Assembly: GCA_047495785.1 (NCBI GenBank)
Contig: JBLDXI010000013.1
Location: forward strand, 1,178,001-1,242,000
Direction: 5' to 3'
Origin: Lepidodermella squamata
Taxonomy: Eukaryota; Animalia; Gastrotricha
Length of the DNA: 64,000 nt
Part shown: in pieces, positions 3,401 to 59,787 of the stretch
Position numbering within the stretch: position 1 is the first letter of the stretch
Layout of the letters: every line of letters starts with the position of its first letter
Position numbers and translations under genes: made by a program
Notes under the pieces: generated by a model
Told to the model about the DNA's origin: nothing
Seen by the model: only the letters and a program-made list of their open reading frames with translations
Database searches by the model: none

Positions 3401-5147
3401 GGAACGGTTGTTGGCTAGTGACCGATGGCTGGCTGGTGCGCCGATTTGCGTCGCCAGTGTCGCTGCCCATCCAAGCGAGCCGAGCAGTTTGACCGAGGTC
3501 AGAATTGCCGCTGCGTCGAAATCCGACATGCTGCTAACCCCGGCTGTTCTACTGGTCGCTGCCCTTCAGCAGAATATCAACGCAACTGGGGGTGGGCTAT
3601 GCGGGGTGATTGGTGCAACTTGCTACAACTGCGGTACTGGCATCAGTGGGCCGATTGTCTCGGGCATTGCCGTTGCAGAGGGTGGAGGATTCAACCCGCT
3701 GGCGTTGTTGATCGCCCTAGCAGTTATCTTGCTGCTGTTGATTTTACTGCTGTTAATTTTACTCGCGATTTGTTGCCGCGCCCGTCGGAAGGCGCCGATT
3801 TTAATCCCGGCCCCGCCGCCACCGCCGACAGTGCCAGTTTTCCCGGTTAAACCGGCTCGTCTTTACGAGACGCAGGAGGCCTACATGGCAGTTGATGCTG
3901 ATCTGGTTCGAGAGCGTGGCTTCGAAGAGCAGGAAGTTTGCCTCAACGAGGGCGTTGAAGAAGCGGAGGAGGAAGTGTTCGAAATCCCGTTGCCTCGTGA
4001 ATACGAGACGCAAACCGTGCTGCTAGATATGCCGACATGGGCGGCGCGAGAGTACGGCCACGACAATCCGACGTTGATTCTCGACCACGAGTCGCACCAG
4101 CAGCAGATTCCGTTGACGCAGCAACACGGCGCGCGGCATTTGTCCGGCTCGGTCTACTCGGAACCGTATTTCAGATCGGCTCACAGCGAGCAGCGCGCGT
4201 TTTCGATGCTGCACATCGACACGAGACCTCAGCCTGTACTGAGCCAGCCGATCGCGAGAGGGGCGCCGCCTCAGCCTCGCCGCGGCCAGATACCATCGAC
4301 CGCTGAGTTATCACCCACCCCGTCCAGTTCGCAGATCATCCGCCAGACTATCGTACAGACCCCGCAGCAGCAACAGCCAGCGCCGCCGCAGCCTCAAGGC
4401 AGGTTGTCTCGCGCTGGAAATGCCACCCCGAGTGTGACGAACCTGCCCGGGGCGATTTCGCACATTTCGCGCCGAATCGGTGACGCGCCCCCGCAGTCGC
4501 AGTCGCAGCACTATCACCACCACCCGCCACAAGCTCCGAAACGCTTGAGCCCTCGCCCCATGCCCGGCAGCGGGTTGTTGCGGCCGGCGATTAGTGCGGA
4601 TAGCATCACGTTGATGTCGCAGCAGCAACAGGCGAGAAGAGCTGCGCTGCAACAGCAACAGCCGGACGACCACCCTGAGATTAGAATGGGCCACCCTCAC
4701 CACCACCACCATCACGGCGCGAGGACAGACGAGTCGGAGCCGTCGGAAGCCGAGGATGTCATGAGGAGGCATCACATCGATGAGGAGGAGCTGCGGGCGG
4801 GCAACGGGCGGTTGCGACGAACGCGCTCGCTGCCCAAGTACCTGCAACCGCCGGCTGAGTTGCAATCGGTCATGGCCGAGTTGCACGACTATATCAAGTC
4901 GCCGGAACAGAAGGCGCGCCGGCGTCGCATCTCGCAGAAGTACCGCGCCAAGTTGCTCGCTTCCGGTGGAGGCGCGGCGCTGGGCAGCCAGCCGGATCAG
5001 ACGAGTCCGAGCAGCAGCAGCGGCTCGCTCGACCAGGACTCGCAGACGCAGCAATCGCAAAGCAGCAGCAGCCAGCAGCATCAACATCATCAAAATAACA
5101 ACAACAACAACGGTGGCAGCAGGGGTCGCGACTACATGATGCTGTAA
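479..5147 (+). CDS. Atypical cadherin (6 EC repeats, membrane-adjacent SEA/MAD-like domain, TM, long low-complexity tail); PCDH15/Cad99C/CDHR-like
   Basis: Exons ~479-497, 556-1220, 1509-1598, 1656-5147 join in frame with GT-AG introns. They give a signal peptide MLPLILALAAILADASLG, cadherin motifs LDYE, LDRE, NINDHQP, DQNDNAP, DQDEFAP, AxDxD, a hydrophobic TM (LALLIALAVILLLLILLLLILLAICC) and a Pro/Gln/His/Ser-rich tail. Confidence 0.92.
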
Positions 5148-12782: not shown

Positions 12783-15700
12783 TCAAGTCTTGAAACTTCT
12801 TATAAAAGTGGACAGAATAGATTGGAAAATAACTGCCAGCCGCGACTGAAAGGTACCCGTTTCAGCATTCTTGCTTCCATCAATCTGCTGCTCGTCTTCT
12901 TGAACTGTCATCATCTGCTCCAATTCGGAGAAAGAATAACGAATAGATTTCCCCTTGCTTTGGTCGTAGTAAGAATAGATGCGGGCTAATGGGCGTTCAA
13001 CATTTGAAACTTCTGATTTCAGATTAAGACGGGCCGTAAAGCAAGTAGGTGACGAAAGTTCGTCGAAGTAGAACACAATTTTACGATCTCTGCCACCAAG
13101 CTCAACACGCTTCAAAGGACTCGTAGCTTTCAATGGGTTCAAAGTTTTGGTAGCTTCTAGATCTGCCGCAAACCCGGTAGGCACGTCTAGTTCGACAACA
13201 ACCATTCCGGATCGAGCTGCAGATGTCAAAGCCTCGACGCAAGACTTCAGATTGGTGGATGAACCGGCAGGATCGGATGAACGTTTCTTTCTAGCGCCGA
13301 ACTCTTCAACAATTATAATTTTGTAATCCCCCGAATCCTTCACCTTGTTAGCTTTCATGTTGTACCGCATCGCCAGTTGTACTATGCCGACACCTGTGCC
13401 GGAAACAGTCAAATCAACAGATTTCAGCGATTGTCTTGAGCGCGGCAGATCGAATGATTGAAGCAGAATTGCATTTGACGGAATCAATAGAAAATCTTTA
13501 AGAAGGCTTTGACCTCGATCGCCATAATTCATGGTGGCCGATACCCTCAAGTTCTGATTCAGTCCGCTGACTTTCGATGCGAACTCACTCAGAGCTTGAA
13601 GACCAACGACTGTATCTTGGGTTGATGAAAATCCACCCAAGGAATTACGTTGTGACATGAGCCATCTAGCGACTAGAACAGCCTCTTCCATCCAGTCATG
13701 ATTCACCAGAGCTAGAAGGGCGTAGGCAGCGGTTTCTATCCGGCCTTGACTTTTGCCACCGGGCCAGAACTTGGCATTATCTTCTAGGGTCGCCGAAGCT
13801 AACAAACGGTTCAAGATCTCAATTGAATGACCCTTGTCATCCGCTCGAAGAGACAAGGCGTAGGAGATCAAAGCCATTTGGTAGGCATCATTGTTGGTCT
13901 CATTTTGAGTCTGCTCAATAAGCACACCGCGGGTCGAATCTAACGAGCTCCACGCTGATGATTCTCTTCTATCAGATTCGGCAAAAGTAGTGTAGATATA
14001 AGCCGCCAAATTGATGCGACTATTAGCCCGACCCTTCATGTCGTGGTGAATAACACGGCCCGATTCATGGAAAAATCCGTCGAGTAGGGCCTGCGTTTTA
14101 AGAAAATTCCATGCCCTATTCATCACGCTAACGTCAACCGACGTCTTCATATACTTTTCAGCGGCTTGGAAGCATCTGATCACAAAGGCTGTCAGCCAAG
14201 TCGATGAAGCTGGGTCATTTTCTCCAAAGGCACTGAACCCGCCGTCTTTTCGCTGGTAAGACAGTTCACGCTGATATCCCTTCAGGACAAACTCTGTCGT
14301 TTTCCCGGCAAGCTCATCACTCAAAGCGCCAACATCTTTCAGGTACTTGTAAATGAAGACATTCGGCGCCAGGGTGACCATGACTTGCTCACCGCAGCCT
14401 GTTGGAAGTCGAACTTGGTGACCTAATTCTGCGATTGCTGGGCCTAAAACATCGCCAGTTGCTTGAAGTTGAAAGAAGCGAGAACCATCCACAATGTGCG
14501 ACACTGGAGTAGCTCCAAACATCTCGCTGACATTGATCCTCACCGAAATAGGTGCTCGCGTCAAATCATCCTCTCGTTTGACGAAAATCGGATAGTTGGC
14601 ATAACGGACTTCGCCTTCAGGTTCGACCAAAATCTTCTTTTGCAAGGCATCTGAGACAGTTGGATCGTCCCGAGAAACTCCGTGAAGTTCTAGAGTTATT
14701 TCGCCAAGCTCTGTTGGCTTCACCCAGATAGTAAGCGACTCTCCCGAGTTCGGCTTGACATCGACATTCATTCGCAGCATAGTCGAAGCATAAGGCCGAT
14801 CGCTGTTCAAACGAACCTCAAAGTCGGGTGATTTTTTCAAGGTCAGTGTAACAGTTTGTGATGTGGTCTGGTAATTGAAGACAACAGCTTTGATGGCGAT
14901 CTCTTCATTCCTGATGACTGTGGCATATGGTATGTCAAGATTCACGAAGAATGGCTGGAACACGGTAAGTTCTGTTGGTTGTTGTAGCGCTCCGAAACCA
15001 TGCTGATCGCCGATCGCAAAAGCGCTGAGTACCCATGATGTCACGGTATCTGGGGCTTTGAATGCCTGTGAAAGCTCTGCGCTTCCAGTCGACATATTGG
15101 CAGTTGACCAAAACCATGTCTCCGGAAACAGACTGCGAACTGTAACAACCGGAGGCTCTGTCGACGACATTAGCTGCTTTGGCTGGGGGTCTGATGATTT
15201 CATTCTGGCAGCTATAACGGAGTCCATTACGGCAGCGGCTCCCTGACGCCCAGCCGACCATGGCGTCCTACCTCTCATTTCCGATGACAGATAGACAACA
15301 TGAAACTCCGGTTCCGGTGGTTTTGCGTCAGTGTGTGCGTTACTCGAGATGAACATGCCAACGCCCTATAAGAAATAATATATTTTGAAACAATTCTACA
15401 GCATGAATTCTTTACCTTGAAAACTGCTTCAGCGCTCGAGCTGTCAACGAAATATGGCCACCAGCCACAGCGCCAACATCGCCATAAAACAGGCCCCACG
15501 GGACGATGGCCGGTTGTCTGCTTGGTGCTCACCTTTCCAAGAACATCATCGATAGTGACATCATTGCCCGACCGTAACAACTTGACACTCTTGTCGACCG
15601 CAAACATAGCCACCGTCGATCCTGTATCATTTGTTCGAACTTTCAGTTCAGTCATGCCGCCTGGTCTGACTACGGCAGGATTGAACTCGGCTGTAACAGA

Positions 15701-17755
15701 TTGGCGGACCAAGCCGTCAACTTTGAATTCAAAAGCATCCGCCAAAACTTCATGGTGTTTGTTTTCGACCGTCCACGCAAGGGCAGCACACCTCGGCGCA
15801 GCGTCGAAAGGTAGCTGAACGTCAACAATAAACTCTGAACCTGAATTCATATTCTCGGGAAACATCAATTTTCGGTACTCAAATGTATGGCCATTCTGAG
15901 CCATCTGTGAATAAATTATTTAATATTTCAAAATATTTTCTGTTAATTATCAAATGCTTACCAGGAAATAGACGTAGTCGGTTGGGAAGCTGACTCTGAT
16001 TTTGAACTTGAGCTTTTCTCCGACCTTTAAAATGCAAGTAAGATCTATCATTAGAAACTTAAAATGTTGCAGTTTCCTTATACCTTGGGAACAGAATGCA
16101 GTAACTCTGACGGGCGATCCATTGATATGGAAACGGCTTGTTTGCTTCGAGAATGCGAAGGATAATTACGTGTTTCGCAGATTTGAACATCCGGAGCATC
16201 ACGAATGAAGGCTGAAAATACCAGTTTATTAGCTCCCAATGGTATGTTAAGATCCAATGAGACCACGCCGAATTCGTCAGACTGATAGATGCCATAGTTC
16301 TCTCGATAAGTATACGGCTGCCTAATGGACTGGCAGGTAGCTTCTGCAGTTGTCGAATAGTAGACAACTACATCAAGTCTTTCCTGAACCGGGGTTTCGT
16401 CAGGGTAGGTCACTTGGAGACGAAGCGGGAACAACATTCCGGGTTTTATCGATTTGGCAACTGAATCGTGAACTTTTAGTTTGTAGGGTTCACGGTGCAT
16501 GGCAACGGCTACGTTGTCCACAGTTGATGCCTCACCAGTCAAATCTTCGGTGACGCTAGCCTTGAAAACTAAATGGCAAGTATCACGCTTCATTTCTCCG
16601 TTATTGTTGTTGTAATTTGTTGTAAACAGAGCTTTGTTCAACCCGGCTAGATGGAATCTTCCATCTTCTGGAGAACCATCTCCCTTGAGCAGGACATTGA
16701 CTTCGAGCAAAGGAGAGAAAACAGCTTTCTCGTCCCGCCATTCGCCGGGATATCGCCCGCGAAGATTGCAATCTCGAAGTAAAGATACAGTCGCGTTACC
16801 GCGAATCGGTTTCCCAAATGTGTACTTAGCTCGGACAAACCCTTGGTAATTCGACTCATTTTTCGAATAAAGCAAGTAGCCCTTCGGGAAATCCAACACA
16901 GCCTCATACTTTGGTAGCACGTACTGCTGAACTAGGAAAATTTTCTCAGTTGATGAATTTTGCCTGTTGACAGTTATTTTCCACTCGCCGAAGTTGACAA
17001 AATCTGACAGATTGAACTCATCGCCGAACAATCCACGTTGCAGTGCTTTGTCCTGCCATATGCTGATCTTATTGTTTTTCGCATCAGTAATTGTCACAGT
17101 TATCCGCCCATTTAGTGGCTGCAGTTCGCGATCAAGCGCTAAAATTCGAAAATACACCTTCTGACTCGGCTTGTACATGACTTTATCGGTTTGGATGAAG
17201 ATAAATTCTTCGAGGAGAGATTGCGGAAGAGCTGATATATCCTTCTCTTTGCTTAGCCCTTGGGTGAAACTGATGGAAACCTTTGGAGAAGCGATTGATC
17301 GTCCTGCAAGATCTTTCATCGAAAAGAAATGCTTCTGAAGCCCGTCTGGATAAATAATAGGAGTTAAGGTGGAAAGTGGAAAGGTAAGTATCAGGTCTCG
17401 TGAAATCTTACGCGAAGATTGGATGAAAGTTTTGCTTGCGATGGTTTCACCATTGTTATTTTCGATTAGTTTTGCAGTGAAAGTCACCGGGAGATTGTAC
17501 TCCCCAGATTCGAATAGAACAAGGTTAAATTCGAAATCCTTGGATTTCCTCGTGAAAGCTGGAAAGGTTACAACGTATCTATACAGATAACAGAACTTCA
17601 AGGTATTTATCACACTCTGGAGAGGGACAATATTACTTGACTGGCTCGCTCGGCTGGTACGGATATCGAGGAGGTCTGATCGGTGGAAGCCAAATCGATG
17701 TACCCAAACAATCAGCAAATATTACGGATAACACAAACAAATTTAGAAGAGACAT
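12783..17755 (-). CDS. Thioester-containing protein, alpha-2-macroglobulin family (CD109/iTEP-like)
   Basis: Signal peptide from ATG at 17755 (MSLLNLFVLSVIFADCLG); FIQTDKVMYKP; QYVLPKYE; AVDKSV; FPETW; thioester GCGEQ (~14385-14399); GGFSSTQDTVVGLQAL; receptor-binding domain SGMVVVELDVPTGF; moderately hydrophobic C-terminus. Confidence 0.95.
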
Positions 17756-35663: not shown

Positions 35664-38230
35664 ATGCCGAAATCGTCCATTTTGTCTGATCAGTGGACTG
35701 ATCGTACGGATGATGAATACGACCTCGACTTTGGCCCGCACCTCAGCCCACCGTCGACAAGCACTCCAACTAGCAACAAATCTTCGAAAAAAAGTGGATC
35801 GAAAAATTTCCGCTGCTGTGGACTGCGAGGTACCGCTCGCAATTTATGCTGCTATCTAACACCCGTCGTTATCCTTAGCCTCATCGTTGTGACTTTTTTC
35901 ACCCTTACAACGCCAGCTCATATTTCGAACATTGTCTCCTCTGGGGTCCGATATTTTCAATCGCAATCGACTGCCGATGAAAGTGTTAGCTACGTGAAAA
36001 TAACCCTGGCAATGTTGGCTAAAAAGCAGCAACAACAAGGCGTAGCAGTTATTGTTAAATTCGCAAACAAAGAAACATCCCCGCGCTTTATCTACAAAGC
36101 TCTTGGCGAGGCCCTAGCGAACATCGAAAACCGGCCTGACGTTACCTACGTGTTATATCTGCCATTCTCTGGAAATTTCATCTTGCCAACTTGGCCTCCA
36201 GTTTCGCGAGAGATCGATGCTGAGATTCAATTTTTCCCGGCCCAAGATTTAACCAAATTCGAAATTGAAAGCCGATGTAATGCACCGAATAATTCTGTCG
36301 CTGTTATTTCGATCAAGCTGGAGCACAGTGTGAGAGAGCACTGGAAATGGTTGATGTCGGCTGAGCGGTTTCAGAGCTTCGACTTCGGCCTGGTTGCAAT
36401 GCAAGACAATTATGATCAGCCTATTACGTTACCCGAACTTGATCCAAGACTTCTTGACCCTTACCAAAAGTGCTACAACGGAGTTTTGATTAAGAAAAAA
36501 TGCTACGCTAAGTCTAGACCGGAAGCTGTGGTTGTTGAATCAATGGATGGAAAGGCAGGCAGCAAAATGCCAGTTGACGCCATGTTCTCTGAGAAATTAT
36601 TCGGTGGTTATGCGAAACATTTCAAATCTATCTGCGGCAATTTAGCGAACTGCGTTGAGGTTGAAAAATCAAGTTTCGGCCGATGTTTGAACACTCATCT
36701 CTGGCAGACTGAACAGCCTTCAAAGGTCATAACCATGCCTGGGGAAGTGAGCGTTGAAGACGAAATGGAGAGGAAAGACTGGTACGTCGAACTGATGAAG
36801 GCGATGGCGATTTCTCAGCGGCGACAGAAGGCTGCGAGGCAAGTGGAGGCGCGAATTCGAAAGCTATACTTTGCCAATGTTACACAATGGATGGTTGACA
36901 AAATTCATCGCCGGCGCAAAGCGGCAATTAAGGTAAGCTTCAGGTTAAAAGTGAAAAATTTATTAAATTCCAATTAATTTCAGTTTCTCAACTACAACTG
37001 CGAAAACTGGGTTGTATGTGGAGGTTAGTCTTTATAAAAATGCCGAGAATTAAATTACCAGAATTTTTCGTAGGCTTAGGCGACCGTCTTAAGGGAACTG
37101 CTTCGCTATTTTATGCTGCTATTTCAACTGGTCGAGCTTTTCATTTCGACTGGGAGAAACCTGTTCATATTGACAATTTTTTTATGGTCAACGCTAATTG
37201 GTATGCCGATAAGCAAGCCGGTCTGAGCGTGGCGAACTACAACTTTTTCCTCGCGAAAGCTAAACTTCATCGTAAATGGTGGTGGCCGGTTGATGGTCTC
37301 GGCGAAACTATGGTTGCCGACTTCAGAAACGAGTCTTTCGTTGATCAAATCGCTAATATATCGTCCTATGATATAACTACGAATCGCCTCAAAGGCTTGG
37401 AGGCGGCGCTGATGAACCCTGCGTTTAAATCGGTTTTATCGGAGATTTTTCCGGAATTTTCGGAGGCGAATTTCAATGCGACGCACTCAATTGATTTGCC
37501 GATTGCGATTTCGGCCGCTTATCGTGCGCTGTTAGGTCGACTTCAACCTGCTCTACTCGACTTTCTGGGCGAAATTATCTCCCGGGCAACAAATATAAAC
37601 AACACTGATACTTGGATAAGCGGTAATGATGGTCGGTTTCTTAAAGTTGGTCTTCAAATTCGAATGGAGAAGGCTGCGTGGAGTGAAGGCGGTGGAAGAG
37701 TGCAAAAGTCTCAGGTATGTTGCCATATTTTAGTTAATCATCATATAAATAAGTTTTTCCAGATTGGATGCTTTGCCGATCTGGCTTCGGAGCTGATTGA
37801 TATATTGAACAGCACAAAATTGCACGGGAATTTCGAGAAGATTTTCATTTATGTCACGTCAGATTCAGAAAATGCAACCGACATAATCCGGCAGAATCTG
37901 GTAAACAGTACGATCGGCGTAGACAAAATAGTTGTATTCGACACAAATTTCGTCCTTGAGTCTTTGAATTTAACGGCAAAGCATCTCGATCGATCAGAGG
38001 TATCGAGCGAACCCCACAAAGCCTGGCATGAAGTTGCGATGATCTACATTGATTGGCTGCTGTTGACGCATATGGATTTGCTGCTGATTAGCCGATCTGG
38101 GTTCGGCGAGACGGCATCTCTGTACTCGCTGGCGCCTACCTGGCGGCTTATGCACGACCTTGTGACGTCCGAAAATCAGTGTCCTTTCCAGCGATTCAGT
38201 CAAGCCGTGACTCATTTTGACTTCAGATGA
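35664..38230 (+). CDS. Type II membrane fucosyltransferase-superfamily protein (alpha-1,2/1,6/O-FucT-like GT-B) with extra N-terminal luminal domain, copy 1
   Basis: Exons ~35664-36932, 36984-37023, 37074-37714, 37763-38230. N-terminal TM; CGGLGDRLKG; motif I KVGLQIR; motif II IYVTSDS; motif III DWLLLTHMDLLLISRSGFG. Confidence 0.82.
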
Positions 38231-38394
38231 TCATGTGTTGGTTGAGAAACTAGGCGGAGAATAAAAATCCTTATTTTGAAATAGATTGTGAATTGTGACT
38301 GTTTCTCCCAATATCCTAATATTGAACAAAGTTCAGCATGAATCGAACTCCGGTCATATTTCGATTTGTAGAATATACCATTTTCATGACCATT

Positions 38395-38849
38395 TTGGGT
38401 CCAAATATTTCCACCACTAAAAATGAGTTTTCAGCACTAAATTTAAGCGTCCTGGCACTAAATTTTTCGGATTCTTTGCGATTTTGGCATTTTCGTGTTC
38501 TGATAGATAGGTACTGATGCCCTCCTTGAACCTAGGATTTTTAATTTAAGCTACATGGTGCCCTAAGCTACGTATAAAATTTATCGATGTTGGGTTCCAA
38601 GACGGCTGATAATGGGGAAATCACTGATTTGTAAAATCGATACTTTGAATCGATATCGGCTCTATAGGATGAAGAATAATTCGTAAACTGACCGCTCATA
38701 GCGCGAAATACGCGTAATACGAAGGTCTATCGGTTAGGCCGGATAGCAAAATATTTGAGATCCTGGTGAAGACTAGAAATTCGAAAAAGCATATTTAGGG
38801 GAAATATAGTGCTTGAGTCTCAAATTTAGTGGTGGAAGCTGGAACCCTA
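38395..38849. mobile_element. MITE-like element with ~50-bp imperfect TIRs
   Basis: GGGTCCAAATATTTCCACCACTAAAAATGAG..AGCACTAAATTT on the left vs AAATATAGTGCT..CTCAAATTTAGTGGTGGAAGCTGGAACCCTA on the right. Confidence 0.62.
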
Positions 38850-39447
38850 ATTTTGGAGTGCCCACTTGGCACACCCTATACTATTCAAACTTGACAATCT
38901 GTCGAAAATTCTCACTTCTTTTTTAGACGACATACCATCCAAATGATCGTCATCGTGTTTGGGTCACCTGAACTAATCCCAACAACGCGATACGACTTGA
39001 GTATTTTTTAGGCAATATGCATTGCGTGACCCGAGCTAGTTTAGAATTTTTTAAGAATTCACGCTAATTTTGATTCACGCAAATCCATTCTTGTGATAAT
39101 GTATCACGGCACGGGTGAGATTTAATCAAAGAGCAATGCGTATTTGCGGTTATTTTTGGCACTATTTTATATTGCAAAAATAAAAAATAAAAAATGTACG
39201 CACACCTGCTGGTCAGTGTTATTTTGCTCTACTACCCAAGTCCATTCCTATTTCGGTATTGTTGAAGCTCTTACTCCATTCGTGCGCCTGTTGAATTAAT
39301 TACGATGCGTTTGAATAATTGATGTGCGGATATAAAACCTCGGTCTTTGGTCCTTCAACCTTCAACCAATTAAAACAATGTTGCATCGATTCTGAGCGGA
39401 AAAGAGGAGATTTACTGCACCCTCATCTCTATTGAGAGAGGTATTAA

Positions 39448-41842
39448 ATGCTTACCATTAGCGCAACCAAGAGACATTGCACGATAGGAAAGCTATGCCT
39501 CATTATTATACCTGTCGTATCTCTTCTCGAGCTTGTGATACTGCTTTTCGGCAATCAACTTCTGGTTCATCTTTCGGCAACTCAACTCTACTTTCACAAA
39601 TTGACGGCTAGGCCAGCTGCTTCGAAACACAAATCTGAAACGAAAGTCGATCATTACGTTAGGATTTTGCTGTCTTATGAGCCGCGACTTCCACTCGCCG
39701 ATAATTTCACAATACCTTTAAAGCCAGCGAAGCGTATTGCTTTGATTATTAGGGTAGACGAGTCGTTCGCCGTTGACTGTTCGAAACCGATTTTCCAAGC
39801 TCAGCAAATAGTAATAGCCCAGCCTGGGGTGTCCTGCGCTTTGTATGTCCCATTCGACCGAAGATTTGTCTGGCGAAAAGCTTGGCTGGAGGACAACGTC
39901 AGAGCTGATATCGAAGTTATTACAGTAGGCGATGATTTGGAATTTGCACCTCGGTGCAAAATCGGCGAAAAAACGAATGCGATCGGAGATTTTTCCCACG
40001 TCATTTCGATAGATTTTCCGAAAGGGTATGGCACTCACCTGCAAACAGCTATTTTGCAGTTTTCAAGGCCCAGTAATTCGCTCAAAGGTTTAGTTGCCTT
40101 TGAGGATGAAATCATCGAAGAGGATTGCTTCAATAACGCTGACAACATCAGTTTCGACAAATTCTCAAGTTGCTACAAAGGAATTTTGTTGCATAGAGGT
40201 TGTTATGGCTCCAAATCTGCTAATCAGAAGAGACCGGGCCAAGTGCTGCCAATGGAACCTTTATCACTAGATTCTTTTCCGTCCAGCTTGAGCCCAAATT
40301 TCAAGTTTGCTGCATCAATATTCGCTGGTTCGGCTGATCACTTTCAACTCATGTGCCAAAGTTTAAGCGACTGTGGCTTTACCAGCCAATGCGTTAACAA
40401 ATATTTTCGAGAAGTCGAAGAACCAAAGCAAGTAATACTATCCAAAGACACTTCAGAGCCATATTACGGCGATCTTTCAGTAACGCAGAAGTGCATTGAT
40501 GTCACCCGCGCTCTGGCTGTTTCAAGGAGACGATTCCAGTTGGCTAAACTTATCGCCTTAAAAATACAACAGTCATACTTTCGCAACGTTACTAGATGGC
40601 TTCGAGAGGCTGAAAACAACTCTTCGTTTCTGGCTAGGAAATTTCTTGTTTACACTTGCGAAGATTGGATGGTTTGTGGAGGTAATTCGTAAATTTGTTC
40701 CTTTTCCCTCTTTTAATCTGAGAATTATTTAAACAGGGTTAGGCGATCGGTTGCGAGGGGTAGCCTCTCTTCTTTATGTAGCAATAGCTTCCGGCCGAAT
40801 CTTACATTGGGATTGGGAAAAGCCGCTCAACGTCGACAAATATTTTGCTGTAAATGATGAGTGGTATATCGACCCTGATCTCGGCGTGACGCAGATGATT
40901 TATGGCCGTCAACGGTCGTTGAGTAGAGCCCACCGTCATTGGTGGTGGCCGATAGATGGATTAAGCAAGACGCTACTAGCTGAGCTGAAAAACGAGACAT
41001 TCAACGAGGAGCACGAGCAGTATTGGTCTTACGACATGACTTGCAACCGGCTGACCCCGTTGGTGCCAACTTTTCACAACGCAGCTTTTCAGCAAGTGCT
41101 GAAAGAGATTTTTCCTGAAATTTCGGAATTATCCACCGAAAATTCGGCCTTTGACATAGACCTATCGATTATCATCTCAGCTGCGTATCAAGCCATGCTA
41201 TCGAACCCGCAGCCTAAGCTGACTCAACTGATGAAAGAAATCGTTTTGAACTCAACCGGAATCCCGTCTTGGAAGCAATGGTTGAACGGCAACAATGGGA
41301 AATTCGTAAAAATAGGCATGCAAATCAGGATGGAAAAATCGAACTGGCAAGAAGGTGGGAATCGTGTGAAAGATAAGCAAATACAATGCTTCGCAGCTAT
41401 GGCGCTCGATTTGTTGGAAATTTTTCGAAAAACAAGGCCGACTCCTGAACTTGAAAAGGTGTTCATATACATCACAACAGATTCGCCAAACGCAACTGCA
41501 ATGATTAAAAATTTACTGCCGAAATCAAGCGATGGCAAATTTATTGTTTTCGATACAGACTCTGCCTTTGTATCGCTTAACGTTTCGTTGAAACATCTGG
41601 ATAGATCTGGGGTATCGAAAGATCCGGAAATGGCGTGGCTAGAAATCGCGAAAGTTTACATGGATTGGTTGCTGCTGACTCAGATGGACTTTCTTCTGAT
41701 AAGCCGCTCAGGTTTCGGTGAGACTGCGTCGCTGCACTCCTTGGCGCCTACTTGGCGACTGATGCATGGCGAAGTGACTGAAAAGAGACAATGCCCATTT
41801 GTCGAATTTAGTCGTGCGCAAACTGATTTCGAATTTCGCTAG
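39448..41842 (+). CDS. Type II fucosyltransferase-superfamily protein with extra N-terminal domain, copy 2
   Basis: Two exons joined at VCGG|LGDRLRG; KIGMQIR; IYITTDS; DWLLLTQMDFLLISRSGFGETA; N-terminal TM. Confidence 0.82.
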
Positions 41843-42023
41843 TCATATTTTGCAATAAATGACTGCAATAAGATATTTAAAAAAACGTGGTTTTATTCAC
41901 AACAAACTTTTTCATTATCAAGAGACGGGCTATAACAAGAAAAGCGGGGAGATGTAAGTACCTAAGCAATTATTTTAGAAAAGTTGTCGAAGCGCCATAG
42001 TCTCAATTCCCGGCATGCCGAAG

Positions 42024-43326
42024 CTAGCTACACTGGTAACCGACGCAGTTACATTCATCATAATTACAGCAAGTGTTTATGTCGAAATCAGAATCAGAAG
42101 AGAAGAATGATGAAGCCAAACAGTCGTCCGAATTGCCAGTATAGCAGTATTGCGCAGTATATCCACTTTTTGCCTGCCGTTCGAGCTGAAGACATGTAAA
42201 TAGTTGGAAGAAAATGTAATATGATAGAGACAGACTGTAATCACCTTGCAATATTTAACTTCTTCGGGGCACTGAATCACAGCCGCCTTCTCACAAGTTG
42301 AAGAATCCGAGGTAGAACAGTTGTAGCACTTCAGAGCAGTAGACGCTATGATAAGGCAATCAACATCAAATTAATTTCACACATTTTTATTGGAAATCTT
42401 ACTTTTAGGCATAGAAAGCGTAGTTATCAGCAAGTTTTCCATTATTTTAGCTGTTGAAGTTGCTCCCTTCACGCCGTTTTCCACAACAGAATCGCACTGC
42501 AAACCTAGGTCATTGTTCAGTTTTGCTCTAAATTGAGGGAAAATAGACCAACATACCTACGCAATTGCAACCGTCGGAATCGCAGCAGGTACTGATATCC
42601 CATTTCGATTCAATTCCAACGGAGCTTCGCTTTCTTGCGACCTTTGGCATACATTTGCTTTCCGTAGCGCAAGACTGAATTGTAATATCTGTCTCTTGTG
42701 ACCACTCAAGCTACGATGCCGTGTAAATTTCACGGTGTAAAAACGAATTATATTAAGGTAATTTGCTCACCATGCAGTAGGGTGTTGCATCAGGACAAAT
42801 GCTGGGAGACGGCGAACCAGCGCATTCCGCCCTTTTGTTGTGGCATTGAAAGCAGCGAATTCCGGGGGTTTCGCCATGTTCAGGCAATGCTGTTTTTTTT
42901 GCGATCAATTCATCGCTTGAATCGAGTGAATCGCACTGTTCTCCTGAAAAGAAATTGAAAGTGCTTCAAGGCGAAAATCACGAATATAAACCTAAGCAGT
43001 TGCAGCCAGTGTAGTTGCAGCAGTCATTTATATCACCCGTAATATTATTCACGTGCCAACAATCATCTAAGTTATCAACGCAAACTTGATGAGCATAATC
43101 GGTTGCAGCAGTCCATTTTAGCTGCGGAAGAAAAAAATGCAGAGAAAAAAGTGACAAACGGCGCGGAAACCTGGCAGGAAACGGATGATTCAGGACACTC
43201 AGCCACACTTCCAGATTTGCAATCCTCCGAAGATCCTAAGCACGAGAAGCACCGAATCGCCGAGCTGTAGCCGACTGTTGCGCAGATGATGAATGAAAGC
43301 GTCAAAAATTCACTGTTTAATAACAT
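42024..43326 (-). CDS. Secreted three-domain Ly6/uPAR (three-finger) protein
   Basis: Signal peptide, then three units (I/L)(R/K)C(F/Y)xC...CCxxxxCN joined in frame over ~7 exons: IRCFSC..CCNYTGCN, IRCFQC..CCDSDGCN, LKCYNC..CCNYDECN. Stops with no GPI tail. Confidence 0.8.
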
Positions 43327-43956
43327 GATTTATTATTTCTGGTTGCTTCGCCTTGATTGTTCTTCGCCTTTGTACGATGCCTTTATATATGTGTGGGTCA
43401 CGTAATGGCCCAAATGGCCCACTTTGAGTCGTCATTTGGGGTCTTTGGAGTCGAGCCCAGTTTCAGCAAACTGCGTTACGTGCTTCGTGTGCACACCTGT
43501 TACAGCTTGTTCTGGTTCTGGATTTTTTTTACAAAAGAAACTGCAGTTTTACAGCATTGCAAGTCAGAGAATAATCTTGAATCTCAATCCTATAGTGGCG
43601 AAATCTGTGAAGTTTGGCACCTATCGTGCTTCATCATCGCTGTTTTAACTTGCACGCTATTTCAGAGACACAATGCATGTAATATTTCATCGCTTCATTT
43701 TTCTGAATATAATTCAACGTGAATATGCAATCTTCAAAGAACAGATGAGCTTATGAATGGCGAGTTGATAAGACACTACGGCCGCGTTGCGGTGTCAATG
43801 CGATGCGCCAACAAACGAGGACACTAAAGCACATTCAACCTGGCTATTTTTTGTGTTTTCAAAATCTCAAAATATACAAGCAGATGTACAAGCTAATTCA
43901 CATATTTAATTGCAAAAGCATCTAAAAAAGTTTAGTCTCACTTTGACTTTCATGCA

Positions 43957-46238
43957 ATGACAGGCTTCCAGCTTTGCCATCATCGTCGAGGTAACTTTCG
44001 GCTGATTTACCTTTACTTCGGCGTAGTCAGCCTGATCGTCGCCAGCGCTACTGGTCTTCAGTTCGTCTTGGGGAAATTCGACTTTTACAACATTGACGCG
44101 ACATCTAGTTATTGGAATGTAACTTCGGGCGATTTTTCGCCGTCTTTTAAGACCTTGAAATCGATCTACCTCCGGCACAATGACTCGGACAATTCAACCG
44201 TTTCTCAGGCCGATATTATAATTGCAATAAATTTCATCGATTTGACGAAAAATCAGGCCTACAGAAAAATCCCTCGGCTCAAGTCCGAAATCGCCTATAT
44301 GTCGCGCCGTAGTGGGATGAATATTGCTTTGATTTTCAACTTCTTCAAATCAGTTGATCCAGCGGCTCAGATTGTCAATTTTTACGACGCGTTCACTTTG
44401 CCCAGCTTCATCATTGCCTTGAGATTTCGCACAATCAACGAAACAGTTTCATTGCTGAAGGTCGTTTTCAGTGTAATGCCTGATTTGCTGGATTTTCACA
44501 AGCGACCAGCCTTAGCAGTGATGGCTAAATTTGCTGATGACACACCGTTGGTAACCAATGGCATTCTATTCGAGAAAAGCTCGCTGGTTCCTATGCGAAT
44601 GATGCCTTTCAACTTGGACCTGCTGGCGGGCCGAGCAAATGCATTCAATACTCTAGCTCATCAGGTCGGACAGTGCTATTTAGCCACAAGACCATCGCCA
44701 GATTATCGAGTAGCTGAAGCCGATTTAAGGCGGTGTTATAATCTCTACCTTAGATCAGCAGAAATCCCGGGTTTTGTAATAACCCTGTCGAATCTAGGAG
44801 ATGGGAAATCAAAGGAATTCTCTGCTCAAAAAGTCGAAGGAGATTTCAAAAAATTTCGACAGCAATTACGTATGAACATGACACTAGCAAGTCAATTGCG
44901 AAAGATATTTGCTGATTCCCAACGTCGACAAGCTCAAGTCGGCGAAATAATTTCTCGACTACGGCAACACTATTTCCGGGACACAACCGAGGCAATGTTG
45001 GCAAAGCAGGCGGAAAGGGAACAGGTGGCAACCTCGAAAAACTTGACATTACCTAGGCAATTCCTAGTATATTGCTGCGAGAAGTGGATGCTTTGCGGAG
45101 GTGATTTATCTAAAATATTTCTCATTTTTTTTTATTCGATTATTGAATTCCTATAGGGTTGGGTGATAGACTGAAAGGCGTTGTTTCGCTATTTTACATG
45201 GCCTTAGTAATGGGCCGAACTTTTCACGTGGCATGGGAGAAGCCTATTGATCTTCGGCAATATTTCCAGATGAATGCCGACTGGTATTTCGCCGAAGCCC
45301 AGGAACATGAAAGCATGCTCTATTTCTTTGAATTCTACGCCGAGCAGCGACTGGAAGCCCGCCGCAAACGGCATTGGTTCTGGCCAATCGATAATAACGA
45401 GCTTCAACTTAGCAACGAACTGTTAAATGGGACGTATGTGCTAGATCATTACGCTAAAATTGACAGCTTGGAAATTACCGCAAATCGCCTCAGAACTTTG
45501 CTGTCGATTTTTTCAAATCCAGTTTTCCGCGAGAAATTATCTCTCATTTTTCCCGAGCTTGGGACATTTTATAACACGGATTTTCATGGAATCGACTTCT
45601 CCCTGCCAATATCAGCAGTATTTCAAACATTATTCTCGAGGACTCAGGGCCGGCTGGGCCAAATCATTGATGCCGTGTTGATAAAAAATGAAATTGAACA
45701 TGGATTCAAGATTGGCGTGCAAATTCGTACTTGTCGTTCAAAATGGGACGAATTAGGAGAAAGGGTCACTCAAGGTCAAATCGGATGTTTCGCGAATCAA
45801 GTACGAAAAATCGCTGATTTCCTATCGTCTCGAAAACGCTCGCCCATCTTCGTTTACGTCACCAGCGATTATTCAAACGCGACATCGTTAATCGAATCCG
45901 CCTTGAATGATACGAATAGATTTAAAGTATTCGATACTCAGGAAACATTCCGCGATGTGTACAACGTGACTGAAATTCTGCACCTCGACCGATCGGCGGT
46001 TTCTAAGCATAGTAAACTTCAAGCTTGGTACGAAATGGCTTCGGTCTATGTTGATTGGCTGCTGTTGACTCAAATGGATGCCCTACTGATTAGTCGATCG
46101 GGATTCGGCGAGACCGCTGCCCTTTACTCGCTTGCTCCTACTTGGCAATTCGTGCACTGGCAAGCTAATGCCACCGATTCGTGCCGTTTCGAAGATTTCT
46201 CCATGGCATTTACTACCGATAAGTTATTCAATTGGTGA
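43957..46238 (+). CDS. Type II fucosyltransferase-superfamily protein with extra N-terminal domain, copy 3
   Basis: Two exons joined at LCGG|LGDRLKG; KIGVQIR; VYVTSDY; DWLLLTQMDALLISRSGFGETA. Confidence 0.82.
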
Positions 46239-48367: not shown

Positions 48368-49801
48368 TCAGAGAACGATTTGGTTCTTGCAATCGTTGAT
48401 CAGCTCTTTGTCGGGAAGCACAACTGAATTGAGGACAATTATCTCCGGTCCGATAACAACGTTCGAGCCTGGGAAAGAAATTATAAGTAATCAAATTTAA
48501 AAATAGCCAGTTTTCATACCAATTAACGTGATTGATGGGTTCAGACGTCCCTGTTCGGAGAAAAGTGGCGAGACTTCCAGCTTAGCATACGGCTTGTTCG
48601 GGTTCGGATCATTTGGCGTGCCCTCAATACGCGACCAAATTCCAATTGTTGACGACCATCCAATGATTGCGTTCAAAATACAGCAATTATCACTAAGGAA
48701 AGCGCCGTCTAGCACGATAGACTCGCGGATACGGCAACCAGCGCCGACAACAACATTTTTGCCAATCGATACATTCGGGCCCAGCTTTGCGCTAGGGTCA
48801 ACTTTAGCCGATGGATGAATGTAAACATCGCCGGTTATCTGAGGAACGCGATCATGTTTGTGATCTCCGTTAACAACGTGGCCATTTGTCATTTGATTTT
48901 GGCTCAAATTGCGACGAATATTCGTCTCGTTGGCTAGCCAATCAGGATGAGTACGTCTGTACATCTCCAAGTAGTGCCTGTTGGCGTAAATCGCAGCTCC
49001 AGCAGATTTGATTTGACTCCAAAAGCGAGTCGTTACATAGACGAAAGCTGGCGTTCCGCTACCTGCGAGATTCGGAAGAATTTCTTGCTCGATCGAAACA
49101 GCTTGGCACGAGAATGAGGTGTCCCCAGCTTGTATCACGTGACTTTTCAAAATTTGCTTGATCACAGGGATCACTTGAGATGAAATGATGTAGATTCCAC
49201 AGTTGATGTAGTTCGAAACGAAGGTTTCTGGCTTCTCAACATAATGCAAGAGCTTGCAAGTATCAGCATCGTGAACGATACAGCCATAGTTGACTGATTG
49301 AGATCGAATCGCCTCTGTCGACATGACGGTGAACAGAGAAGACTTGTCTCGATGGAATGCCAGCATATTCTCCAAATCGAAATCACAACAAACGTCAGAA
49401 TGCGTCACAATCAACGTATCAGTGTCGTCACCGAAAATCAGATCACGGAAATGATAGAATCCACCGGCGGTTCCAAGCGGGGCATATTCTTGCAGGTAAC
49501 GAATTTCGATCTTGGGAAAATCGCGGTTGATTTGCGTAAGGAACTTTGTCAAAGGTCCGTTTTGTTGATAAAACCCCAACAAGTAAATTTCTTTGATATC
49601 TTTCACCTGATAAGTACATCTCAACATAAGTATGAAATTTAATCAAAATCACTTCCTTACTTTTGATAATGCCTCAATATGATGATAAACTACCGGATGT
49701 CCAGCGACAGGAAACAGCGGTTTTGGAACATCAAGGGAAAGAGGTCGGAAACGCGTACCCTTGAGAGGTCCACCAATGAGCACGACACCCTTGACAGGCA
49801 T
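48368..49801 (-). CDS. GMPPA: Mannose-1-phosphate guanylyltransferase alpha (regulatory subunit)
   Basis: [68 protein letters not shown], hexapeptide repeats, [11 protein letters not shown], ends NQIVL-stop; 3 coding exons. Confidence 0.95.
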
Positions 49802-56089: not shown

Positions 56090-59000
56090 CTAAAGATTAG
56101 TCTTGCGATGACTCGGGTAAAGGTTGATTTCCATGTTGAGGTGATCGCCGAGTTTGTAATTCTTCTCAAACTGGCAATCTTCGCCTTCGTTGCGGTGATT
56201 GAAACGGCGCGTAGGTACCAACGAATATTGGCTAGCCGATTCGCCGAACCCGCTTCGGCTGATGATGAGGTAATCAGATTCAATCAGCATCAACCAGTCG
56301 GTGAATGAACGCACGTGATCCATCCACATTTCTTCTTTCTTCTTGGGTGAGAGGAATCTGGAACCAGGAATCAATAGTTAGGTTTTTGATATCCAAAGTC
56401 TGAACTTTACCTGTAAGCCCCACGATTTGTTCGATCGATATGAGTTGGAGCCTTGTGAACAGCATCGCTGAGAGCTGGAATGTCAGCCTCGGCGAAATGG
56501 TCCAGCAGTTCAGCTGTCGCTCCTTCGCTATCACTGGTAACGAAAACCATCGGCCTTTGAATCCGCTCTTCCTTGATCAGGTTCATTGCCTCTTCGAAGT
56601 AACATTTAATCTGATCCGCCGACACTCGAGCTTCCTCTTGCCATTCCGGCTTCTCCATGCGAAGTTGAATGCCGATTCGGGTCGACTCGCGCCAATTCGG
56701 TTTCGTCGGGCCCATCGCCACCAGTCGCTTGTACTCTTCCTGAAGCTGCTCAACCGGCTCGTTGAAAATGACACGAAGGGCAGCCGATACTAAAATGGCG
56801 TTCGTAATCTTCTCAGGTGATCGTATGTAACCAGGAAATTCTCCGAGAATCTCGCAAACATCGGCTTTGTAGACCTTATTCTGCACGGCCCCTCGAAGCC
56901 CGTATAGGGAATTCGTCATAACAGCAACGCGATCGGCTGGCTCACGGGAAATCATAGAAGAGAACAGGAATAGCTGCTGTTCAGCAGCAGCGTCCATGTA
57001 ATCAACCTTGGATCGCCGGGATTCGTTCAAAGCTTTCTCGTATTTAGACTCAGAAACGCCGTAGAAAGCTGCATTAGTTCTGTAGTATTTACCCATCTCG
57101 AGGGGCAGGATCCAATGGTTGTTGAAAATTCGGTTGCTCAGCATGCCAGTGTATAACATCGAAACGAGACCTGTTGAGAAACGAAGAGCGATGTTAAGAA
57201 ATTTTAGATTTCAAATGTCTACCTCTTGATCGATCTCCAAAGCCACCGCAATAAATTCTCTCGTCTTCGCAATTATATTCGATGAACTACAGGTATAAAT
57301 AAAATCAGGTGAAACAATCGGGTAAAACAGTTAAATTTTCTAACCTTTGTTTTCTTGCAATTAGCAGCGAAATGATCGTGCACTCTCTTCTTGTAATTTC
57401 TCATCAACCAATCCGTGAGCTCGACAGCGAGTTGCTTGTCCTCAGGTGCGCCAGGTTCAGACGTCGCCAGTTTGAACTTGCAGGTGTTCTGTTCAGTCAC
57501 AGGTAACGGAGAGCCGTCCATGCATCTTACGTCGCCTTGTTCTGCTTCCTCTTTCAATGGTTCAGCGGGTTCCACTTTTCGCTTGGTCTCTTCGGTGGCA
57601 GCAGAATCATCTTTCGCAACTTCGTCGTGCTGTTTGATTTCGGGCGCTTCTTGCGATGCAGATTCCGCTTTGGGTTGAGCAAGTGGCTCGGCCGGGTCCA
57701 ATTCTGCGGGAATGGCGATGTTGGCAGGCTGTGTCAATTTCGCCGATTTCTTGGCTTCAGCAGCAGTGCGAGGGGCGATTTCCGAATCTTTTCGTGGATT
57801 CAACTTCGAAGCCTTCGGCCTCTTCTCCTGGCTATTTTGGTCCGTGATATGGTCGTTGCTCAGCTTTTTCGAACTTGGCTGTTCACGAGTCTTCTTGTGG
57901 GCAATCGTTTTCCCTTCGGTCGAATCAGCAGTAGCAGCTACCTTGGTTTCGACAATTTGAACCATCTTTTTGCGCGATTCACTCTGGGTTGCACTTTTCT
58001 TAACGCTTTCGATAGATGCCGAGGCAGCTGTAATTTCTGGCTTCGCTTCAGCGTCCATGTCGTCAACTCGATTCCGGGTGACCACTTGTTTGACAGCGCG
58101 ATCTTCTTGCTTCAACGATTCAACCTTATCAACCGAGTGATGCGTCTTTTTAAGGCTGAATTTCGAAGACGAATGCTGATGAGATTTGCTTGAAGTGATC
58201 ACCTGTTCTGCTTCATTTGCCGTTTCCGTCGAAGCATCGTGCTTCTCCTCGTTCTTCGCAACGGATTTCAATGAAGACATCGACTTTACTACTTTTTTCG
58301 GAAATTTCAGCTGACCATCCGGACCGATTGGCGACTCGTGTTTCAAACGGTTCAGGCGATTATGCTGTTTGGGATGGTTGAGTTGAGCCGAATGAGGTTG
58401 AGCTCCAACTTTTTCCGATTTTTCCCTCGTGTTCTCGGCCAACACCTTTCGCTCGAAAAAGCTCTTCGCTTTTGTTTCATGCTTCTCTTCTGAATTCTTT
58501 TCAATTCGGCTGATCAACTTTTCATGTTCGCCATTTCGTTGACGATCAGAGTGAGGGTGCTGATGAGCGTTATTTGCAGCAACTTTGCCCGTTTTGTGAT
58601 GACTTTTGATGCCAGAAAAAGGAAGCTGACCTTGAGGGCCGATAGGCGAGTCCTTCTGCTGTTTCCTTTGATGGTTCTGCATTTGACGAGAAACTTCAGG
58701 AACAACTCTTTTAGCGGCCGAACCGTCGTTGTTATTTCTAGCCATAACCTTCTTTTCGAAGAAGCTCTTAGATTTGGCCGCAGGACCATTCAGCCCGACG
58801 GTTTCCTCGTACTCTTTATCCAAGGCATAATATTGCCCCTCGCTTTCAATAGCACCTGGTTTTGGTTCGTTTCCAGCAGGCATCTGGCCCATTTCCTGAT
58901 TGATCTGCTTCAAAGTAGGTAATTCTGGATTCTGCTGTTTCGCCAAAACTCTCCGCTCGAAAAAGCTTTTCCGCTTATTCTCCTCCGAAGTCAGCAAACG

Positions 59001-59372
59001 TTCAACAACTCCGGCTGATTCTTTCGGGGCTGTAATTTCAACCGGAGCCTCAACGGGTTTGCTGTCACCGCCAACCGACCACGGTCGTTTGAAGCCGGGT
59101 AAATCGCCGGTTGGCTGAGGAATTCGAGCAACTGACGAGCCATCGACTTCAACAAGCTTCTGCTGATCTTGCTGGCTAAACACCCTAGCAGCTGTCTTTG
59201 GCGAGCTCGACTGCAGCGTATTTTCAGTGGCCAAAAGGCTTGGCACGAATAGAGCTACTACGCCACCCAGTAAAATCAGCGACAACACTTTGAAAGGCTT
59301 CGAGGTCCACCATCGATACGATCGAAGTTTAAGGCGACCGCTCGAAGAATCGTGAGCACTACTGTTATTCAT
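56090..59372 (-). CDS. Type II fucosyltransferase-superfamily protein with very long repetitive stem, copy 4
   Basis: TM VLSLILLGGVVALFVPSLLA; ~600-aa low-complexity stem; YCGGFGDRSR|G; RIGIQLRMEK; VFVTSDS; HIDR; DWLMLIESDYLIISRSGFGESA. Confidence 0.8.
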
Positions 59373-59787
59373 AACGTTATCGAAAATGAAACGAATAAAA
59401 GTGATTGAATAACTGCATATCTCCGGTTGATTCGCGTGCTGGAACGCGTGTTCGGACACATCATCATAAATAAAAAACAACTCAATAATGAAATTTTAGG
59501 TTTTTTATTTTCTGCAGCTCTTTTGTTTCACGATTTCCGTTATAAATAAAAAAATTTATATTTTTGGTGATTAATCGAAAATGAAAACCTCATCTAACAA
59601 CAACATTGCTATTGAGAGAATATATTTACAAGAAGCATGGCTGAAAAATCGAGAACCACAACAAAAATGAGACGACCACGCGACACATGACAATAATCGA
59701 GTCGAACCAAATTGCATAATTTTTCTGAGAATAACACACACACGGCGCGATTTTAGGCACAAGGAAGCGAGTCGCCGCCATCGCTGC

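Follow-up and report, generated by a model that had tools for sequence, protein, structure and literature searches.

A family of glycosyltransferase-like genes was analyzed in a 64,000-nucleotide (nt) stretch of the genome of the gastrotrich Lepidodermella squamata (GCA_047495785.1, contig JBLDXI010000013.1, positions 1,178,001 to 1,242,000), hereafter the window, to which all coordinates refer. Three tandem paralogs, all on the + strand, lie within 35664-46238: copy 1 (35664-38230), copy 2 (39448-41842), and copy 3 (43957-46238), located from their open reading frames (ORFs) and translations. Exon arithmetic gave protein lengths of ~741-805 codons, and the introns, 48-56 nt long, all have canonical GT..AG ends (5 of 5). 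Each copy consists of a short N-terminal tail, a transmembrane (TM) helix, a luminal domain of ~230-300 amino acids (aa) (the N-domain), and a C-terminal domain of ~365 aa (the C-domain). A conserved linker helix, A-x-S-Q-R-R-Q...R-I-x-x-x-Y-F, sits between the two domains and is followed by F-L-V-Y-x-C-E-x-W-M-x-C-G-G-L-G-D-R-L-K-G and the rest of the C-domain. An earlier sequence-only reading had described these genes as fucosyltransferases fused to a degenerate domain of glycosyltransferase family 6 (GT6, ABO-like), and the luminal domain was found where that reading had placed it, between the TM helix and the fucosyltransferase-like half. With a short tail, a single 20-23-aa hydrophobic anchor near the N terminus, and a luminal region, copies 1-3 show the features of type II architecture, and an N-terminal hydrophobic anchor was also present in three relatives (P0006, P0007, and L001). 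The three proteins are predicted to be type II membrane proteins of the secretory pathway, presumably residing in the Golgi.

Exon 1 of copy 1 (35664..36932, with the donor GTAAGC at 36933) encodes the cytoplasmic tail, the hydrophobic TM anchor (aa 61-83; 35844-35912), the N-domain, and the linker helix (36807-36872). A mini-exon (36984..37023), flanked by TTTCAG and GTTAGT and with its frame read by eye, encodes FLNYNCENWVVCG(G), the first strand of the fucosyltransferase-like domain and the beginning of its motif I. Exon 3 (37074..37714) carries the N-terminal part of the C-domain (LGDRLKG..., VGLQIR), and exon 4 (37763..38230), preceded by an in-frame GT..AG intron of 48 nt, carries the C-terminal part (HLDRS, ISRSGFGETA) and the stop codon. 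For copy 2, exon 1 (39448..40681), which is covered by RNA-like X2 contigs, encodes the hydrophobic TM anchor (aa 16-35; 39493-39552), the N-domain (about 39733-40443), the linker helix (40516-40581), and the start of the fucosyltransferase-like domain, RKFLVYTCEDWMVCG (40636-40680). Exon 2 (40737..41842) encodes the C-domain with LGDRLRG, IGMQIR, HLDRS, and ISRSGFGETA. Copy 3 is organized in the same order, with TM anchor (aa 16-37, hydrophobic; 44002-44067), a shorter N-domain (about 44209-44781), linker helix (44911-44976), and C-domain start in exon 1 (43957..45100), which ends with RQFLVYCCEKWMLCG (45055-45099), and a C-domain with all four motifs in exon 2 (45157..46238).

In copies 2 and 3, the intron interrupts a codon of CGG|LGDR, after CG and before G, as does the second intron in copy 1. 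The first C-domain strand and the beginning of motif I are therefore already encoded on exon 1 in copies 2 and 3. X2 contigs contained the joint 40681->40737 of copy 2, which is in frame and skips 55 nt with GT..AG ends, and X2 depth inside this intron was zero. These observations, and those on a neighboring gene, where X2 shows six additional canonical joints as well as a poly(A) end, indicate that X2 represents spliced RNA, and the joint indicates that copy 2 is expressed as a fusion. The stretch over which X2 was examined takes in copies 2 and 3; coverage of copy 3 was thin and contained no observed joint. Two relatives encoded on animal metagenome contigs, P0006 (665 aa) and P0007 (700 aa), have an uninterrupted ORF spanning N-domain and C-domain; the genes adjoining them are a 7tm_1 gene and a HAP1_N gene. 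At two further metagenome loci (L001 and L003), the CGGLGDR junction lies within one exon. Copy 2 is thus transcribed and spliced and encodes a single polypeptide, which bears out the single-chain architecture of the sequence-only reading. Nothing was found in support of the two halves being separate genes or separate transcripts; prokaryote-style gene calls did split L001 and L003, due only to an intron. That arrangement is already refuted for copy 2 by the spliced joint, and the first C-domain strand on exon 1 and the uninterrupted ORFs of P0006 and P0007 also speak against it, leaving it with a practically negligible probability.

The window copies were searched exon by exon. No match was obtained with Pfam on all six exons of these copies or in a PDB sequence search with single exons. 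A profile of the 10-member C-domain family retrieved only four PDB sequences at E <10, all of them fucosyltransferases: AtFUT4 (E 0.063), AtFUT1 (two constructs), and NodZ; E values for the plant enzymes ranged from 0.063 to 1.4. The alignments pair GLGDRLKG...YAAI with GLGNRL...YALL, IGVQIR with LGIQIRV, and ISRSGFG with SRSTFG. Three of the 10 family members matched Pfam XG_FTase (GT37, PF03254) at E <= 1 (best E 7.7e-5), and the nearest language-model neighbors of the C-domain were the O-FucT, FUT8, XG_FTase, and NodZ clusters, at 0.94. The donor-binding motifs GLG(N/D)R, xIQxR, and SRSxFG are retained in copies 1-3 and are invariant or nearly so in the family (n=10), in which neither the Arg of QIR nor the ISRSGFGETA block varies. 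A point on the other side is that the PF03254 gathering score was not reached, the chytrid relative P0004 scoring 20.5 bits against a cut-off of 23.4. The proposed fucosyltransferase domain stood as a member of the fucosyltransferase superfamily, nearest to GT37, but not as a domain above Pfam gathering thresholds. The results support an apparently intact GT-B fucosyltransferase-superfamily domain, closest to plant GT37 but not a Pfam-level member, for which GDP-fucose is the probable donor.

The same C-domain occurs without the N-domain. A fourth, divergent family member was found on the - strand at 56165..59480 (tblastn E 2e-19 and 8.6e-24; exon joins read by eye). It has a TM anchor, a stem of ~650 aa that is rich in K, E, and S and of low complexity (ORF 57273-59480), FIEYNCEDERIYCGGFGDRSRG, and an intact C-domain with IGIQLR, THIDR, and ISRSGFGESA. 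The stem carries a repeated KSFFE(R/K)KV(L/M)A motif; the protein lacks the GT6-like domain and has this disordered stem in its place. Outside the window, the C-domain family without N-domain includes the 480-aa chytrid protein P0004 (Fimicolochytrium jonesii) and the metagenome proteins P0003 and P0005, which have CGGLGDRLKG, IGIQFR, and ISRSGFGETA and no Pfam assignment. A scan of JGI metagenomes with C-domain motifs confirmed no relative. A search with the WMxCGGLGDR DNA pattern gave just two matches, in bacterial DNA of 64% GC (guanine plus cytosine) content, which were rejected as chance.

All peptide strings quoted for the N-domain in the sequence-only reading are present in the order claimed. 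In copy 2, these are RIALIIRV (39733-39756), VSCALYVPFD (39829-39858), FSHVISIDF (39991-40017), GILLHRGCYGS (40180-40212), FKFAASIFAGSA (40300-40335), SQCVNKYF (40384-40407), and EEPKQVILS (40417-40443), all on the + strand. The late block is kept in copy 1 (LFGG, 36585-36608; CLNTHL, 36675-36701; EQPSKVI, 36711-36731) and copy 3 (LLAG...CYNLYL...EIPGFVI). By tblastn (E 7e-28 and 1e-9), the N-domains are genuine paralogs, but they are only 24-28% identical among copies 1-3, compared with 43-52% for the C-domains; the divergence of the N-domain is about twice as rapid as that of the C-domain. HMMER with an N-domain profile detected only two proteins among 1.84 billion representatives, P0006 (E 1.8e-15) and P0007 (E 1.4e-5). 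Word-index searches returned no homologue with the N-domain and only the query itself with full-length relatives, and tblastn of the P0007 N-domain against phages gave no match.

A GT6 reference set was built by scanning a collection of bacterial genomes for DNA matching a W-H-D-E-S-H-L-N pattern, which gave 120 loci; 10 ORFs from these loci were checked with Pfam, and all 10 matched PF03414. The consensus of a reference alignment of 68 bacterial sequences (KIxxLYIATG, YFVFTD, DYxFFxNAN, HPGF, GGFNGG, WHDESHLNRY, KxLxP) agreed with the GT6 landmarks given in the sequence-only reading. A profile of seven N-domains (the three window copies and four relatives) was compared with the 68 bacterial GT6 sequences using hhalign, giving one local match of 46 columns with P 0.0021. 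It aligns ~f~~~FFGG~a~~F~~iC~~v~~C...F~~ClN~YLr of the N-domain with Y~~GGFNGG~s~~fL......WHDESHLNrY of GT6. In copy 2, this block, NFKFAASIFAGS...SQCVNKYFREV (40297..40416, + strand), is the only stretch that aligns significantly with GT6. The same register was recovered with the three window copies alone (P 0.003) and with the four relatives alone (P 0.0022). Among controls, the reversed query gave P 0.36, three unrelated profile pairs gave P 0.10-0.56, and none of 40 block shuffles reached the observed score of 29.5 (shuffle maximum 26.9). A truly related pair, the C-domain of the window family and bacterial GT11, reached only P 0.047 in the same setting. In global mode, the N-domain and GT6 were co-linear over 240 columns (score 25.8, compared with <=12.1 for shuffles; P 7e-5), pairing beta1 with beta1, the DFxxxxS strand with DYLFFxNAN, and LLHRGCY with HPGF; we give this alignment little weight because the relatives-only subset fails in global mode. 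Protein-atlas neighbors of the copy 2 N-exon were GT-A families (GT77-type Nucleotid_trans, GT6, GT8, and DUF6625) at 0.90-0.92, which is a weak range.

Other results weigh against a GT6 origin of the N-domain. PF03414 did not match any of the three window and four relative N-domains, even at E 10, and the seven-member N-domain profile reached no glycosyltransferase among PDB sequences. The PDB matches that this profile did give, ribosomal protein S16 and an adhesin, were rejected as noise. When a hidden Markov model of bacterial GT6 was run on all 338 window ORFs, the N-exons were not enriched (rank 47 and 74 of 208), and when single sequences were compared with the GT6 profile using real bacterial ORFs as decoys, the seven N-domains ranked from 5 to 84 among 207. 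The conserved GT6 block also draws decoy alignments, and the N-domain's N-terminal half alone gave no independent signal (P 0.14). The hhalign probability for GT6 was just 13% in local mode and 35% in global mode. AlphaFold models were unusable (pLDDT [predicted local distance difference test] 37.5 for the copy 2 N-domain with 3 sequences, and 40.2 for that of P0007 with 7 sequences), which reflects the small number of N-domain relatives, and Foldseek on these models returned only noise, with no match at E <0.2.

These data could also be explained if the N-domain were a lineage-specific luminal alpha/beta domain or stem of other ancestry, the FFGG...CLNxYL likeness being due to chance or convergence and the protein being a GT37-like fucosyltransferase with an unusually long stem. 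The negative Pfam, PDB, and HMMER searches, the unremarkable single-sequence ranks, the attraction of decoys to the most conserved GT6 block, the entirely different stem of the fourth paralog, and the presence of only two N-domain relatives among the representatives searched are all in keeping with such a stem. It fits less well with the profile-profile match, which was better than every other pairing tried and than all shuffles and came back in two subsets with an unchanged register. Atlas neighbors with an assigned family are of the GT-A type and include GT6, and the N-to-C order of GT6 then fucosyltransferase occurs in bacterial fusions (described below). We regard a stem without GT6 ancestry as a serious possibility, though below an even chance. 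The likeness of the N-domain to GT6 appears to exceed chance only in the late block. The degenerate GT6 domain of the sequence-only reading was weakly supported, by the late-block alignment and the weak GT-A/GT6 neighbors, and was invisible to Pfam, PDB, and HMMER. GT6 ancestry and its absence appear about equally probable to us, and a GT-A-like fold of the N-domain, to which its beta/alpha alternation and its GT-A language-model neighbors point, somewhat more probable than its absence.

In the hhalign register, copies 1, 2, and 3 have G, S, and R, respectively, at the position of the GT6 catalytic Glu, and the Trp, His, and Asp that precede this Glu in WHDES are also absent from copies 1-3. 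The DXD/NXN motif is likewise lacking in the three copies, a low-confidence extended alignment placing VISID, VISIK, and LLKVV there. The absence of the DXD and WHDESH motifs in this register agrees with what had been noted from the sequence alone. The Glu of WHDES is reported to be conserved in all known GT6 members, and in BoGT6a the substitution E192Q costs 2x10^4 in kcat (PMC3516806). If the GT6 register is right, loss of this Glu and of DXD/NXN implies that the N-domain is catalytically dead, and the idea of a pseudo-enzyme fits this pattern. The accompanying suggestion that the domain serves as an acceptor-binding module received no specific support: Trp189 and Glu192 of BoGT6a, which contact the acceptor in GT6 (PMC3516806), are not conserved.

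An active N-domain with non-canonical residues would instead make the protein a true bifunctional enzyme, in which a single chain attaches fucose followed by another sugar, as is presumed for bacterial GT6-GT11 fusions. Such bacterial proteins, including GT11-GT6 and GT10-GT11-GT6 arrangements, do exist, and two relatives have an acidic residue at the catalytic-Glu position (D in P0006 and E in L003). The residues found at this position in the window copies, the missing DXD/NXN, the conservation of the Glu in known GT6 enzymes and the cost of replacing it (PMC3516806), and the low conservation of the N-domain all make a second activity very unlikely.

We favor, by a modest degree of confidence, an intact GT37-like fucosyltransferase and a degenerate, non-catalytic GT6 remnant on one chain, in which the donor, the Golgi location, the GT6 ancestry, and the role of the N-domain are the inferred parts. 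The three tandem genes would encode secretory-pathway membrane proteins of type II topology, with a C-terminal GT-B domain whose most likely reaction is the transfer of fucose from GDP-fucose onto a glycan. The luminal N-domain would most probably be a GT6-type (GT-A) remnant that has lost the catalytic Glu and DXD/NXN. It may act as a non-catalytic module, such as a spacer, an oligomerization module, or a substrate-presentation scaffold, rather than as a second enzyme. The faster divergence of the N-domain and the disordered stem that replaces it in the fourth paralog argue for such an accessory role. In a more elaborate scenario, a single-chain "blood-group synthase" arose in an invertebrate lineage by fusion of a GT6-derived domain to a GT37-like fucosyltransferase, in parallel with bacterial GT6-GT11 proteins, and was later expanded there. 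In the window copies, the GT6 half would have become a new glycan-binding or regulatory module, or would retain a non-canonical activity, and would thereby direct how H/A/B-like glycans of the surface or mucus are fucosylated. We consider this scenario improbable.

Several other features of the window were recorded. A cadherin-repeat gene (1656-5147, + strand) and a thioester-protein/alpha-2-macroglobulin gene (12783-17718, - strand; MG2, MG3, A2M, TED, and A2M_recep domains) identify the window as animal DNA. An intronless ORF with NTP_transferase and GMPPB_C domains (48497-49627, - strand), a GDP-mannose pyrophosphorylase-like gene, is located 2.3 kb downstream of copy 3; GDP-fucose derives from GDP-mannose. 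The spliced neighboring gene mentioned above (41876-43358, - strand) lies between copies 2 and 3 and is well covered by X2, with six CT..AC joints and the poly(A) end at 41876. It encodes a Cys-rich product with a repeated CCNY(D/T)xCNC motif, and its single exons had no Pfam match. Over 39624-40891, within copy 2, X2 contigs were identical to the window, whereas X1 DNA contigs were up to ~8% different, including small indels inside the copy 2 intron. This difference points to a divergent allele, haplotype, or strain. The allelic differences listed for the copy 2 N-exon comprise 11 synonymous and 15 non-synonymous changes, an incomplete set with too few changes for measuring selection.

Pfam recognizes neither half of the window proteins, and their known relatives are a mere handful in databases of billions of proteins, so that these genes appear to form a family of animal glycosyltransferases that is not yet catalogued. 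If the GT6 ancestry is true, GT6 would extend beyond vertebrates and bacteria, the window proteins would be a second case, after EXTL3, of a two-domain Golgi enzyme with a dead transferase domain, and animal and bacterial ways of coupling fucosylation with GT6 chemistry would be linked. If it is false, the genes would still define a new animal clade of GT37-like fucosyltransferases whose stems vary.

The plant GT37 enzymes AtFUT1 and AtFUT4 (PDB 5koe, 5kop, and 9nqh) have type II topology, as do the window proteins, and share with them GLG(N/D)R(I/L) with a hydrophobic helix, the Arg motif IGIQ(I/V)R, and SRS(T/G)FG. The window family differs in its sub-threshold similarity, its animal origin, and its extra N-domain. 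The N-domain resembles GT6 enzymes (ABO GTA/GTB, GGTA1, and BoGT6a) in its co-linear landmarks, the weakly significant FFGG...LNxY block, a comparable domain size, and its luminal location. Unlike GT6, it has no Pfam match, lacks the catalytic Glu, the Trp of WHDES, and DXD/NXN, and is placed before a second glycosyltransferase domain.

Single-chain combinations of GT6 with a GT-B fucosyltransferase were found in the bacterial genomes. GT6-GT11 proteins are encoded at L079 (1215-2804, - strand) and L094 (6004-7593, + strand), each of 530 aa, and at L062 (958-2898, - strand; 647 aa). A GT11-GT6 protein is encoded at L006 (193-1686, - strand) and a GT10-GT11-GT6 protein at L015 (3750-6407, - strand). 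All of these fusions pass Pfam thresholds in their domains. Other bacterial combinations were GT6-GT2 (L035), GT9-GT6 (L071), and GT6-FkbM methyltransferase (L011). A literature search found no paper on bacterial GT6-GT11 fusions or on an animal equivalent. The statement of the sequence-only reading that it knew of no described fusion like this has to be qualified, since GT6-GT11 fusions exist in bacteria. In L079, L094, and L062, GT6 is N-terminal, the same order as in the window. In contrast to the window proteins, the bacterial fusions keep WHDESHLN, have GT11 rather than a GT37-like domain as partner, and have no TM anchor. They are uncharacterized.

As a whole, the window proteins appear to belong among the bi-domain type II glycosyltransferases, with a link to GT6 that is unproven. 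Within this group, the bi-domain exostosin EXTL3 offers a parallel: this type II protein of the Golgi carries a pair of glycosyltransferase-type domains, and the one whose nucleotide site is apparently inactivated may serve only as a spacer (PMC9178029). EXTL3 combines families GT47 and GT64, and its order is an inactive GT-B followed by an active GT-A domain, whereas in the window proteins the putative GT-A remnant precedes the predicted GT-B fucosyltransferase domain.

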